64,000 nt of DNA from Tetramitus jugosus (GCA_937625935.1 OW569384.1:368433-432432); one strand, 5' to 3'; positions 47,391-54,072 are shown, numbered from the stretch's first letter. The notes: generated by a model from the letters alone, not told the origin. A program made the numbers and translations.

Positions 47391-47891
47391 TTACTCGGAT
47401 GGTGCACTTCTTGAGACTTGAGAAGCTGGCATCTCTTCGCCAGTCAAATCACCTTCCTTGCCCTTCTTGCCACCTGGAACAGCTCCAATCAATGACTTGT
47501 GAATGTGAGGAATGACACCACCACCTGCGATAGTACCCTTGATCAACTTGTCCAATTCTTCGTCACCTCTAATGGCCAATTGCAAATGTCTTGGTGTAAT
47601 TCTCTTGACCTTCAAATCCTTGGATGCATTACCTGCCAATTCCAAAACTTCAGCACACAAGTACTCGAGAATGGCAGCAGAGTAGACAGCAGAAGTAACA
47701 GCAACTCTGCTGGATCCGTGAACTCTGGATTTCAAATGTCTGTGGATTCTACCGACTGGGAATTGAAGACCAGCCTTGACAGAACGAGAGACTGGCTTGC
47801 TCTTTCTGGTGGAAGTCTTAGGGGTGCCAGTTGTTGTGGTGGCAGTTGGTGTTGAGTTGCTGATCTCTTGAGAGAGTTGAGTATCGGCCAT
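47391..47891 (-). CDS. H2AZ: Histone H2A.Z variant
   Basis: [70 protein letters not shown]. Confidence 0.95.
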
Positions 47892-48154: not shown

Positions 48155-50895
48155 TTATTTGGAGAGGGTGTCAACTTGGCGCAAGATAACATCACATAGG
48201 AGCAGTTGGTTGACTTCAGAGACTGGAAGCGTCTTGAACTCTGTGGTTTGGATATCTACAACTTCGTCGACAACTCCCAACATGCTAGATGCAGAGTTTT
48301 GAACGAGGTTGCAATGTTGAGTGATGATTGCTTCCTTGGATGCTTGTGACATGACCACATCAGCATTAAACACGTTCTTTGCACCTGAGAATTCAGACAA
48401 ACTGCGGCAAGAGCGGACCATTGGCAAATGGAGACATTTGACAGATGTTATCTCATCAGAGCTAGATGTAATGTTTGTGTAAACATGAGACATATCGAAG
48501 AATCGAGGTCCATATCTCTCGTTGTTTGGCCCAATCATTGGGTTGGCACCTGTCAAGTTGGCATGATCAGAAATGTTGATCGCTTTACCCAACAGACCTG
48601 CATTCGTGGAGATGAATGCTTGAGTGAAGACAATGTGCTTCACTCCCAAGTGTTGGAGGAATCTTACATAGTTGCCCCAATCAATTTTCATCTCTTCTTG
48701 CTGTGCGTGATCAATATCGGTTGATTTAAGACTCACGGCATAGAATTTCTTGCCTTCGTGCTCAAGCAATAAAATCTCAGCATTTTGTCCAATTAATCGA
48801 GATGCATTGGTCAGTGGTTCCACATCAACAATAGCGACATTGCGCTTCTCGCTCAACAATTTGACTAAATTCAAATCATAGTCCACGAGTGCAAGTTGAG
48901 GGACTTGGTCTAGTTGAGACAAAACACGAGTGGCAACATCTTGAAGCGCGTCAAATGAGATATTAGTATCATACTTGACCTTTTGTTCCTTGATGGATTG
49001 AAGTCTTTGTTCCAATTGTTCATAATTCAGTTTTCCGAATTGGACATTGGATTGTTGCTTGACTGGTGCGATTTGAGCAACCAAATCAGTAATTGATGTC
49101 AAGTGGCGGCCTTGAGAGAGGTAGACAGAAACGTTCAATCCCAAGTATCTGGCAGCATAGACAGTCGCAACGGAAGTGGTTCCGACAAAGTCAACACCAA
49201 ACTTCTTAGCCATCTGGTATTCACCATTGGAAGGCTCAGATGGACCACAGAATGACATGTACGATGGAGAGTGCTTTTGATTTTCTTGGTAAGGGAACAA
49301 GAATTGCTTCTTTCCGATCGATCCATCATTCAAATAGATCAAATATGGATGGAGAGGGGAGGAGGTATCATGGAAATGATACAAATCATACAGTTGAATA
49401 GTTTCAGTACTAGTGATGCTGGCGCTTGATGATTCTAAAATAAATGAGAAAAATTGATTGTTGGGGGTGAGAACGTTATGAAAAATAAAAAATGATTATG
49501 CTTTCACACAGAAAAAGAAGCAAACAAGCACATACTTCCATGAACCGAATGAGACAGGTTAGAGATACCTAGCGAGTACAAAACAATGGAAATGAATGAT
49601 GACTCTTCAACGGTGAATCCCTCTTCGTCACCAGCAACCACGATCAATTCATTTTGATTGTTCAATGCAATGTAACCATAATTGGATCCGGAGCATCTGA
49701 TTGGGAATTTGTTTAAATCGACAATGGAGACTCTTGACTTGAATTGCTCCGTACCGTTCGTTCTAGGATAGCAAACAATGTATGCAGTGTCAGACAATGG
49801 ATTTTCAGTGCTAATGTTCAATGATTTCTGAATATCGGACACAGTCTCATCTACTGCACTCTTCAATTCAGCACTCGTGTCAGGGAACGATCGTCTCACA
49901 ATAGGTCTCAAAATGGTTTCACTCAAGTGATCAATAGGGACAATATCAGGATGGTTGTTCAAATAGTCACCGATATTCAACAAAACCTTCTTTAGCAGAG
50001 TTTTCAAATAGATGACAGATTTGTTGGCATTGGTGTACACTTCCTCGTGATTCAATTCACTGCTACTCAGACCAGCTGCCAAATTGGTAACCATAGATAT
50101 GCCCAGAACACTCATTCCATATGCATGAGCAGTCACAACTTCAGGAACAGTGCTCATACCGACACAGGCACCTCCCAGGTTCTTTGCAGTAATGACTTCC
50201 ATTGGTGTTTCGAATGAAGGTCCACTCGTCCAGACATAGCTTCCTTCAAACAGTTGAATACCTTCTTCCTTGGCAATGTTTCGTGTAATTTCATTGATTT
50301 CATTGTCCCAGTAAGGAGGAACATTGTCTTGTTGCTGTTCTTGCTGTTGTTCTTGTCTTCTTGCCTTGGCCAAAACTTGCTCTGGCAATTCAAATTCACT
50401 CAATGGATCCTTTCTTGCCATAAATCTAAAATGATCAGTCAATAGACAGAGACTACCCAGTCCCATACCATCCAACATTCCACCAGTTGCATTAGTGACA
50501 ATGTATAGCTTTGTACCGAGAGCAGCCAACAATCTCACAATAAAACAGACTTCTTGCCATGGGATGCCCTCATACGAGTGAACTCTACCAGCAAAACAGA
50601 GAACAAGTGGATTGTTGCTGCCATCGGTGGATTGTGGAGGTTTCATGAAACCACAGATCAATTGACCATGATGACTGGCAACAGTGACTTTTGGCATATG
50701 GGGAATGTGATCATAGTCAATGGTGACTGTTTCATGGAGAACTGATGGAAAATCGCCGAGTCCACTTCCTAACACGACACCGACAGAGTGGGATGACCAA
50801 CGATTGCTGAGTTCAGAGCGCACATAGTTGGCAGCTTGTTTGATTTGATCAATCTCTGATTGAATTTTTTGATTTTCGTTATTGTTGTGAGTCAT
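48155..50895 (-). CDS. PNP: Purine nucleoside phosphorylase (trimeric-type fold) with three tandem PNP domains, one intact and two degenerate; 2 exons (50895-49536, 49434-48155), 879 aa
   Basis: Domain 1: GSGLG, GRVHSYEG, TNATGG, GPSFET, VGMSTVPEV, TNLAAG, NHEEV. A 101-nt GTATGT..TTTTAG intron joins the 463-aa and 409-aa ORFs in frame. Domains 2 and 3 show PNP-like GPSE..E...G.D.VGTTSV..V.AAR..G and DHANLTG.NP.IGPN.ER.GPRF.DM. Confidence 0.85.
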
Positions 50896-51228
50896 GATTG
50901 TGTGTGTTTGTGTATGTATGTATGCGAGTGTGTGTAGGTGTGTCGATCTAAATTTCTTTTATCTATCTATATGTATAATTATGTACGAAAGAATCAAGTT
51001 TGTGTGTTTTTGTTTTTTCAACTTTTGGTGTATTGAGGATTGCAGCGACGTGTTTTTTTTACACTACGAGTTTGAGACAGAGACGGATTGCCTCTTCGAT
51101 TTCGAGGAGAAGTCTCGTTTTCTCCGTTTCTCCGATGAGCGAACTCCAAATGAACTAAAAGGTTTGTCCGCTTTTCATCTTCAACAACGAGTTCGCTGTC
51201 TGGCAAACACAACAACAAACTACACACA

Positions 51229-54072
51229 ATGAGCTCAGTAGCGATCCCTATGGAGGTTTTGTGCAATATCTTGTCGTTCCTACCGAATAGAAACCTGACA
51301 GAATGTGCCCTTGTTCACTCCGAATGGCACAATGCCTCTCGAATGACCTTTATTCAATATCGTATATCGAAGCGACTGTATGAACAATTGAGACAACAAG
51401 TGGCCACTGCTTATTCAGTGAATTCGGTTGATGATGAAAAGGGTGATAGGATAGATGATGATAGTGATGCTGATGAAACCGATGATGATCACAATCAACA
51501 GAAAGAGGAAAATGGACAAGAGGGAGTGATGGATGAAATGATGAGTGATTTAAATGCTCAGGGATACTTTGCCTTCTTTGTTAGAAATGTCATGTATCCT
51601 ATCCAACGAGCCATCACCAGTCAAAAGAACGTTGCAAGTGGCAAATCAAGTGGTTGTTTTATATCGAGTCCACCGTTGCATTTTCTGATCGATTCCGGTT
51701 TGAATTGTGAGGTACTGTTTGAACATTTGGTGAAAGCGAGCAGGAAGAGATTGGATGAAGTGGATCGTAATGGCAAGAACGCAATTCGTTTATTGTGCGA
51801 GCGATCAAAGGTTTCTCACATGTTTAGCAGAGAGTCCAGCACTGATTTGTTCTCAATATTGGTCGATCATATGAGTTCTTTTCTTCCTCCAAGTGATTAT
51901 AATAGTAGTTATGTGTATCGTCCAGTGGACACAGCAGCTTTCCTCGATTGTTTAGATAACTTGGCAATGAATAAGCGTTATGATTTATTGAAAATCATTC
52001 TGTCTTCCACTTTGGGTAGGAAAGCTGTTGCTTCTTCAACAGAGCCAATGAGTGTGTTATGGAAAGATAAAACATGGGAATTCTTGGATGAACATATGAG
52101 TGAAATTAAAGACTGCATAGAGTTGTTAGTCGAGAATGGTTATGATTGGAATTTGTATCCGTTGAATGCATGCCCTGTTCATATTGAAATCATCAAACAA
52201 ATGATGGAGTTGGGTGTTTGGAATAGTGCAAGAAAGAGTGCAGTCGAGCGGTTGATTCATTCAATTTTGCGTGCTGGGTTTCTAGAGGCATATGACTATA
52301 TGTTCACCTATTTACAGAGATATGATGCCAAAGGTCAAAAAGAGACGAGAAGAAAAAAGATTTTAGAGCTTTTAGATCCCAGAGTATCCTGGATGAACTC
52401 TCTCCATACAGCTGCTGCATCAGGCAAAGTTCCGATGGCGCAATATATTAGAAAACAAAATCCTACTCTAATTAATGCTCCCTATACTGAAGGCTCTTTG
52501 CCTCCATATTCGACACCATTGCTCATACCATTGCATTTCGCAGTGCAGGAAGGAAAGTCATTAGAGATGGTGAAATTCTTGTTTGAGAGTGGTGCTGATC
52601 CAATGGTGACAACAAGAGACAACTTCAACAGCATTCACTTGGCGTGTAAAGTTGGTTGTCTGGAAATATTTGAATACCTAAGGTCAGAAACAGGCGCCTC
52701 ATATCATATCCCATCAACCTCTGTACCTCTAACTATTGTTTCCAATTCGTTTCTATTGGCAGCATCACAACCCAACAACTACAGAATGATCCATTATATT
52801 TTATCCAATCGACCAGATGACATGTCAGCGGATGATATCTTACAAGAACATAACCGATCTGTGAGAAATGTATTGACTTTGATATGTAAGTCAAAGGTAA
52901 CAAATGCGAGAGAGGTATTCAATACAATCAAATATCTATTCTCATTTGGAATTACAAGCACGAAACTGTTTTCGGTGCAGGACGAGATGCACGCCAATGC
53001 GCGTGTGTATGCTCGGACGTTTATGCCGCCGTCAATTGTAACCCTCATGGATTATTATTGTTCATTAGAGAGTCATTTATTACCTATTGTAACATCCATT
53101 GACGGTTCAGGCATTCCATATTTATGTGAAGATACTAATATCATGGCTTACATCTGTGAGTCGGGTGATACAGATCTATTCAAGCATGCAAGGCAAAGTT
53201 CCATTTGGACGTTAGATATTTCAACTCCTATCCATATGTCAAATATCTTGATTGCTGCAGCATTTGGAGGTAATTCTTGCATTATTGAGAATGTGTTGGG
53301 AAGCATCGATCGTAGCGCAAACATAGATTGGTCTCGTGCAATTTGCAAAGCTACACAATCCTTTGTACAACCATCTGAAATTGTTAGAAACATTCAAATT
53401 ATTTTGAAAAGAGCATTTGAGTGTGGTTATAGGAACGATATTCATGGTAAAAAGTGGGTTAATGAGATCTTGGATGATGAGGTGTCCAGTTTCATTCGAG
53501 AGATTAGCGATTACAATCACCAGATTCATATTTCCATTCACATGAATGACATCGAATCAGTGAAGGAGATTCTCAAGAAAAATCAATCAACAGACTGGAA
53601 GTGTCACTCATTGAAGAAGGGCTCTGTTGACAGGCCAAGAACTGCCATTCAAATTGCTTGTTCCTTTGGAAATATGGAAGTAGTTCGACTTCTCATTGAG
53701 TCGGGCTCTTCAATTGATTACATGTGCTTTATGAATGCAGCAGCATCTTGCAACATTCAGCTTCTCAATCTCATTATTCAAAATTTGTCAGAGAGGGGTG
53801 TTGTGGATTTAACGAAACAGCTTGGAAATCAAACTGTATTGCATTATGTGCTCTTAAACTCAAGTGAAATGTACGAAGCAACCATACAATGTATTGCCTT
53901 TCTCATTCGTAGCGGGTGTTTCAAATGTTTATCGATGGCAGATGGTGATGGATTGACTCCTGTTGATCTAGCGCAAATGATTAACGAAAAGATGCACCAA
54001 TATTTGAGTTTTGTGAGGGATATCTATCAGATTCGTCAATTTTCAAATCAGAAACACTTATCCGTGGTGTAG
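51229..54072 (+). CDS. F-box + ankyrin-repeat protein
   Basis: N-terminal IPMEVLCNILSFLP...L.....V...W F-box; ankyrin motifs LHTAAASG, PLHFAV, IHLACKVG, TAIQIACSFGN, GLTPVDLA. Confidence 0.85.
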   Translation: MSSVAIPMEVLCNILSFLPNRNLTECALVHSEWHNASRMTFIQYRISKRLYEQLRQQVATAYSVNSVDDEKGDRIDDDSDADETDDDHNQQKEENGQEGVMDEMMSDLNAQGYFAFFVRNVMYPIQRAITSQKNVASGKSSGCFISSPPLHFLIDSGLNCEVLFEHLVKASRKRLDEVDRNGKNAIRLLCERSKVSHMFSRESSTDLFSILVDHMSSFLPPSDYNSSYVYRPVDTAAFLDCLDNLAMNKRYDLLKIILSSTLGRKAVASSTEPMSVLWKDKTWEFLDEHMSEIKDCIELLVENGYDWNLYPLNACPVHIEIIKQMMELGVWNSARKSAVERLIHSILRAGFLEAYDYMFTYLQRYDAKGQKETRRKKILELLDPRVSWMNSLHTAAASGKVPMAQYIRKQNPTLINAPYTEGSLPPYSTPLLIPLHFAVQEGKSLEMVKFLFESGADPMVTTRDNFNSIHLACKVGCLEIFEYLRSETGASYHIPSTSVPLTIVSNSFLLAASQPNNYRMIHYILSNRPDDMSADDILQEHNRSVRNVLTLICKSKVTNAREVFNTIKYLFSFGITSTKLFSVQDEMHANARVYARTFMPPSIVTLMDYYCSLESHLLPIVTSIDGSGIPYLCEDTNIMAYICESGDTDLFKHARQSSIWTLDISTPIHMSNILIAAAFGGNSCIIENVLGSIDRSANIDWSRAICKATQSFVQPSEIVRNIQIILKRAFECGYRNDIHGKKWVNEILDDEVSSFIREISDYNHQIHISIHMNDIESVKEILKKNQSTDWKCHSLKKGSVDRPRTAIQIACSFGNMEVVRLLIESGSSIDYMCFMNAAASCNIQLLNLIIQNLSERGVVDLTKQLGNQTVLHYVLLNSSEMYEATIQCIAFLIRSGCFKCLSMADGDGLTPVDLAQMINEKMHQYLSFVRDIYQIRQFSNQKHLSVV

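Follow-up and report, generated by a model that had tools for sequence, protein, structure and literature searches.

The 64,000-nt stretch of Tetramitus jugosus DNA analysed here (the window) encodes an 879-aa chain with three purine nucleoside phosphorylase (PNP)-fold domains, which we read, at a probability of about 0.65, as a single-chain pseudo-trimeric PNP with one working site, in domain 1, on which the inter-subunit loop of domain 3 would dock as the donor. Two features of a pseudo-oligomer were found in this protein: three homologous PNP-fold domains lie in one chain, each position forming one clade, and the pocket and the trans motif are in different domains, the pocket only in domain 1 and the canonical trans loop only in domain 3. 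Retention and loss are complementary between the domains, and the core of the domain 3 loop is invariant throughout the family. The probable reason for the survival of domain 3 is the help that it gives to the sole working copy.

The gene spans two long ORFs on the minus strand (49504-50895 and 48155-49384), and its exons were searched individually. The search of representatives with exon 2 retrieved a stored protein of 879 aa (P0001), on which every full-length analysis was based and which is identical to the spliced product save for E673D. It derives from JGI sample 3300028260, in which its record of 2796 nt (contig L004) aligns to positions 51038-49536 and 49434-48152 of the window with 98.4-99.5% identity. 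Since this contig omits exactly the proposed intron (Table 1), the splice and the expression of the triple PNP gene are independently supported.

L004 is a transcript-like spliced contig from an environmental sample, and its 5' leader, of 147 nt, aligns to 50896-51038, placing the transcript start at or upstream of 51038. A divergently transcribed gene starts at 51229, approximately 190 nt from the 5' end of the contig, which suggests that it shares a short promoter region with the PNP gene. Immediately 3' of the PNP gene we observed a 166-aa ORF (47391-47891, minus strand), in which a core of the histone H2A type follows a long N-terminal tail rich in Thr.

Table 1. Features of the triple-domain PNP gene, in window positions, with residues numbered as in P0001
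Feature	Position	Strand	Evidence
Triple-domain PNP gene, start to stop codon	48155..50895	-	ORFs, gene model, match to P0001
Domain 1 (aa 12-312), catalytic PNP domain	49960..50862	-	Pfam PF01048, NCBIfam, Foldseek, residue map
Domain 1 inter-subunit loop (aa 158-197), degenerate, with a Q/E-rich insert replacing GPN..RF	50305..50424	-	Profiles, alignment, pLDDT
Domain 2 (aa 340-578), dead PNP domain, split by the intron	49061..49878	-	Family alignment, profiles
Intron, 101 nt, GTATGT...TTTTAG, phase 1, within domain 2	49435..49535	-	Sequence and spliced contig L004
Domain 2 loop region (aa 470-505)	49280..49387	-	No GPN/RF motif; F500 at the probable Phe159 position; pLDDT 64-70
Domain 3 (aa 608-879), complete PNP fold, catalytic residues lost	48158..48973	-	VIA-align, residue table
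Domain 3 inter-subunit loop (aa 743-772), equivalent to human PNP 134-166	48479..48568	-	Alignment, conservation, pLDDT ~90
G762-P-R764-F765, equivalent to human G156-D-R158-F159	48500..48511	-	G, R and F invariant in 53/53

The only other PF01048 genes in the genome are one MTAP gene and one uridine-phosphorylase/DeoD-like gene. The MTAP gene, on contig 16 (L001:1357-2274, minus strand), codes for an unfused protein of one domain and 305 aa, which scores above the TIGR01694 cut-off, and the uridine-phosphorylase/DeoD-like gene, on contig 45 (L003), apparently contains an intron. A canonical single-domain trimeric PNP is absent from the PF01048 genes of this genome, and the triple fusion is its only trimeric-type PNP.

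Judged by its scores and catalytic residues, domain 1 belongs to the trimeric-type PNP family and is the catalytic domain. It matched Pfam PF01048 with an E value of 3.8e-33, scored above the NCBIfam cut-offs of the PNP equivalog and inosine/guanosine/xanthosine phosphorylase subfamily models (NF006054, 239.4 bits against a cut-off of 218; TIGR01697, 207.1 against 197.1), and superposed on solved PNPs with TM values of 0.8-0.9 in Foldseek. The residues kept are S44, H76, R104, H106, Y108, N135, A136, F228, E229, M247, S248, T270, N271 and H283, which correspond to human S33, H64, R84, H86, Y88, N115, A116, F200, E201, M219, S220, T242, N243 and H257, respectively. All of the sites tested (in human numbering, S33, H64, R84, H86 and S220 for phosphate, Y88, F200, M219 and H257 for ribose, and E201 and N243 for the base) were found in domain 1 and are missing from domains 2 and 3, and the catalytic columns of domain 1 are invariant in the 44-47 family rows that cover it.

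In trimeric PNPs the interface is formed chiefly where loop 141-168 of a monomer meets segments 87-91 and 196-205 of the adjacent one, and Phe159, in the middle of an aromatic cluster, is the sole active-site residue supplied from another subunit (PMC9916683). The loop thereby puts Phe159 into the ribose pocket of the adjacent monomer. A preliminary description, made from the sequence of the window, had stated that domain 1 replaced this loop with a Q/E-rich insert at about 50310-50410, and our analysis places the insert at 50305-50409 (aa 163-197), where alignments to the PNP HMMs bypass it, passing from profile position 142 to 164 over aa 161-196. The AlphaFold2 model gave this loop a pLDDT of 70-86 and predicted, with modest confidence, a helix at 172-187. 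The catalytic domain has no GPN..RF and hence no inter-subunit loop with Phe159 of its own; the motif occurs only in domain 3, and the protein as a whole possesses such a loop only if it is supplied across domains.

Domain 3 presents the reverse pattern. By VIA-align it matched human, calf and bacterial PNP chains with Z scores of 23-24 and an rmsd of 2.9 Å over ~250 residues, and the match spanned the human and calf chains end to end, from residue 2 to 284. At the positions of human S33, H64, R84, H86, Y88 and N115 it carries L, N, K, T, I and Q, respectively. The C-terminal half of the domain could not be aligned by sequence, and a BLASTP comparison of domain 1 with domain 3 gave no significant similarity (E 0.89). 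As for domain 2, its scores on the PNP models were far under the cut-offs (24-54 bits for the two domains). The loop was the best-matching portion of exon 2 and aligned residue-for-residue with the loops of solved trimeric PNPs, the stretch reaching an E value of 3.7e-08 to 4m1e and matching residues 100-168 of the human chain. The earlier proposal that a nearly intact loop persists in an otherwise decayed domain was thus borne out, the limits first given for it (48478-48575) enclosing the loop but falling out of codon register. As judged by alignment, the canonical inter-subunit loop, with its equivalent of Phe159, survives only in domain 3.

Exhaustive and word searches retrieved approximately 50 other proteins laid out in the same three domains, from Heterolobosea, Amoebozoa, jakobids and unnamed protists, with several eukaryotic supergroups represented. 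The named sources are Acrasis kona, Naegleria fowleri, N. lovaniensis, Willaertia magna, Planoprotostelium fungivorum and Andalucia godoyi, and the remainder come from MMETSP and EukProt transcriptomes and from metagenomes. The named orthologues, annotated merely as 'purine nucleoside phosphorylase' or 'hypothetical protein', are 28-35% identical to the T. jugosus protein along most of their length and have its architecture and the invariant GxRF of domain 3, but the domain 1 loop differs by lineage. In the clade of the window it has been swapped for inserts of 30-60 residues without RF, whereas outside the Heterolobosea-like clade most members carry NPLxD...(D)xRFGx(R/K)H in this region (P0001 aa 154-200), where Asp takes the place of G149 and His that of Phe159. 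The non-random form of the latter, as read from the alignment, points to a donor loop that is modified yet conserved. Two further observations concern protein length. The P. fungivorum orthologue (P0158, 1300 aa) has an additional histidine-phosphatase domain (PF00328) at its C-terminus, after the three PNP domains, and matches of 570-750 aa, considered as natural two-domain variants, were rejected as such, their C-termini looking like mis-called gene models.

In a tree built from 24 members divided into their domains together with 16 single-domain PNPs, domains 1, 2 and 3 each formed one clade (SH-aLRT 99 each). This topology indicates that the family goes back to a single old triplication and that the domain positions are orthologous. 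Only four columns were invariant in all 53 aligned rows, G755, G762, R764 and F765, and all four are in the domain 3 loop, with N757 and D767 present in 51 of the 53. The mean column entropy of this loop was 1.57 bits as compared with 2.99 bits for the rest of domain 3, 2.00 bits for domain 1 overall, 2.72 bits for domain 1's own loop and 3.28 bits for that of domain 2, and no other 30-residue window in domains 2 and 3 had a mean below 2.38 bits, making the domain 3 loop the most conserved segment outside domain 1. A Phe occupies the Phe159 position in 2/47 copies of domain 1, where His is often found instead, in 31/45 copies of domain 2 and in 53/53 copies of domain 3. GxRF is nearly invariant also in the single-domain PNPs used as a yardstick, although these had been found via this loop. 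Conservation of the loop among orthologues, which the preliminary description had put forward as a check, therefore holds family-wide, and the pattern in the alignment, which goes far past what chance would give, strongly supports the action of selection on the domain 3 loop.

The domain served by this loop would depend on the order of the three domains in the presumed ring, for which there are two possibilities. In order A, the loop of domain 3 serves domain 1, that of domain 1 serves domain 2 and that of domain 2 serves domain 3; in order B, the loop of domain 3 serves domain 2, that of domain 2 serves domain 1 and that of domain 1 serves domain 3. AlphaFold2, run on P0001 with the 53-row alignment, produced one compact body with a mean pLDDT of 88 and a pTM of 0.91. 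Searches with Foldseek and VIA-align returned single-domain matches only, and a search of the ESM Atlas only a weak match to domain 1.

Order B, which has the opposite handedness, would place the domain 3 loop on the conserved dead pocket of domain 2, as a keystone or in a non-catalytic ligand site, and would cap domain 1 with the F500 loop of domain 2. Part of its appeal comes from domain 2 itself. This domain is recognisable solely via a GPS..VG.T segment. The preliminary description had it lacking the loop, and that holds for the GPN/ERxG/RF motif, which is gone, but not for D470, P480 and F500, which are kept, the last of these after a variable stretch. The F500 column is hydrophobic in 41/45 relatives (91%), counting those with Phe. 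The domain also has a signature of its own, in aa 425-431 and 517-525 and at P480, formed by E431 (44/51), P480 (43/48), G517 (41/53), P518 (46/53), P521 (46/53, at the E201 position), T/S522 (47/53) and E525 (47/53). The acceptor face made up of G517, P518, P521, T/S522 and E525 would fit an interface between the domain 3 loop and domain 2. By these counts the pocket face of domain 2 is under selection, with a scaffold, a partner for the loop of domain 1 and a ligand as its candidate roles.

Other properties of domain 2 speak against this arrangement. The length of its loop differs by tens of residues among members, low-complexity inserts occur in it and the Phe is missing in one third of them, which would be unlikely for part of a conserved active site; variability of this kind in the alignment is unlike a catalytic element. 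In addition, the position of human F200, the stacking partner, is aromatic in 47/47 copies of domain 1, whereas in domain 2 it is E520 in this protein and E, K, Q, S or R in much of the clade. The polar or charged character of this domain 2 position while F765 is invariant argues against the packing of F765 on domain 2. In order A, an invariant canonical loop would be matched with an invariant aromatic pocket.

We also folded aa 331-879 with AlphaFold2 as a control lacking domain 1 (pTM 0.89). Most 10-residue blocks shifted by no more than 4 pLDDT units, while the tip of the domain 3 loop (751-770) lost 8-9 units and showed altered DSSP bridges, a change of confidence and predicted conformation that counts against order B. 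The removal of domain 1 also lowered 491-500 of domain 2, as order B would have it, and 821-840 of domain 3, with drops of 8-9 units at 491-500 and 821-830, and the control is therefore not clean, its effect on 751-770 being suggestive. The DSSP bridge at 498, lost in the same control and at first sight a further point for order B, was discarded as a contact reporter, given that residues 474 and 515 ceased to be strand at the same time and the bridge was probably intradomain.

Three further candidates for ring-order evidence were set aside. The interface pairs of N137/N145 with 199/E205 do not discriminate between the orders, the donor residues being partly kept in all three domains (the E205 equivalent is present in 41/47 copies of domain 1, 47/53 of domain 2 and 20/53 of domain 3). 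Covariation between position 754 in domain 3 and 111 in domain 1 merely tracks clades, and the relation of domain 1 loop type to hydrophobicity at domain 2 position 520 is essentially that of one clade and hence weak. Literature searches on the chain termini in PNP and MTAP trimers, as a guide to ring order, found nothing. In MTAP, one and the same neighbour extends both its C-terminal Leu279 and its His137 into the adjacent site, and this would favour service of domain 1 by domain 3. Weighing these points, we consider order A, with the domain 3 loop serving domain 1, the probable arrangement, and order B unlikely.

A second explanation is that the loop is kept only for the folding of domain 3 or for the general packing of the three domains, has no specific contact with domain 1 or its site, and that the ring may not even be closed. 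The canonical PNP loop does 'belt' its own monomer (PMC9916683), and the same source, citing Erion et al. 1997, reports the activity of human F159A as almost unaltered. However, domains 1 and 2 adopt the PNP fold without the motif, which is thus unneeded for the fold; no other non-catalytic position is as invariant across supergroups as these four residues; and the pTM of 0.91 points to a single compact body. We regard this explanation as improbable, about half as credible as order B. That the loop is a relic or a product of chance, domain 3 merely being slower to decay there, could be entertained for a single sequence and for nothing beyond it, and can be dismissed, since the same pattern recurs in 53 homologues in which each domain position is one clade and the remainder of domain 3 is as diverged as domain 2.

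If the domain 3 loop does serve domain 1, an ancient triplication and fusion would have left one interface still serving a live site, with domain 3 retained as the donor half of that interface. The loop (aa 743-772, with G755, N757, G762, R764, F765 and D767) would then be under purifying selection for buttressing and capping the domain 1 pocket (Y108, F228, E229 and H283), and the pocket of domain 3 itself, together with the loops of domains 1 and 2, would have been free to decay. As to what the loop contributes, alanine scanning predicts a cost of 2-3 kcal/mol in interface stability for F159A, and a PNP monomerised by six alanine substitutions is folded and inactive (PMC9916683). Because F159A is reportedly nearly harmless and the monomerised enzyme is inactive, the loop more likely shapes the pocket segments of its neighbour (Y88, F200 and E201). 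By analogy with the human enzyme, the selected role is more likely to be stabilisation of the interface and pocket than direct chemistry by the Phe, and for the same reason a kinetic effect of mutating F765 is a weak criterion for the role of the loop.

As compared with homotrimeric PNPs (human, calf and bacterial PNP-I; TIGR01697/NF006054; PDB 1ULA, 3FUC and 4M1E), the fusion has the same fold, catalytic residues and cut-off scores in domain 1, and the same fold and loop motif, NP.xGxN....GxRFxDMS..Y, in domain 3. It differs in being one polypeptide of three diverged copies rather than three identical chains, in having one active site instead of three, and, as far as the alignments indicate, in placing the trans loop and its pocket in separate specialised domains. 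MTAP, the trimeric sister family, shares the superfamily, the trimeric architecture and the presence of residues from the neighbouring subunit in the active site, but the copy in this genome is an ordinary protein outside any fusion. Literature searches for a triple-domain PNP found no description of one.

A comparable route is known from another enzyme. In the monomeric dUTPase of herpesviruses, a homotrimer with shared sites became a single chain by duplication and fusion, the conserved motifs being retained in a complementary manner so that one site is left, and three-domain single-chain dUTPases have been reported in some animals. The PNP fusion is alike in principle, the motifs of the trimer being shared out among fused copies, but the fold and the chemistry are different and the PNP fusion retains three full domains.

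Much work has gone into trimeric PNP, both as a drug target and as a model enzyme, and the need for the trimer and the communication between its sites are still argued. One-third-of-the-sites inhibition has been reported for PNP. The retention of one pocket and of one neighbour loop in different domains shows which parts of the trimer selection maintains, and the asymmetry of the fusion allows the pocket to be mutated separately from the trans loop, something impossible in a homotrimer. We think it fairly likely, if slightly less so than the docking in this one protein, that across several supergroups a single site is built from the pocket of domain 1 and the capping loop of domain 3, with domain 2 keeping a separate dead pocket of possibly regulatory or scaffolding function. 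If this one-site, two-domain reading is true, the family would be a natural experiment on the need for the PNP trimer and on its reported one-third-of-the-sites behaviour. With the fusion as the only trimeric-type PNP in this genome and with orthologues in Naegleria fowleri, the unusual architecture is relevant to how such protists salvage purines.
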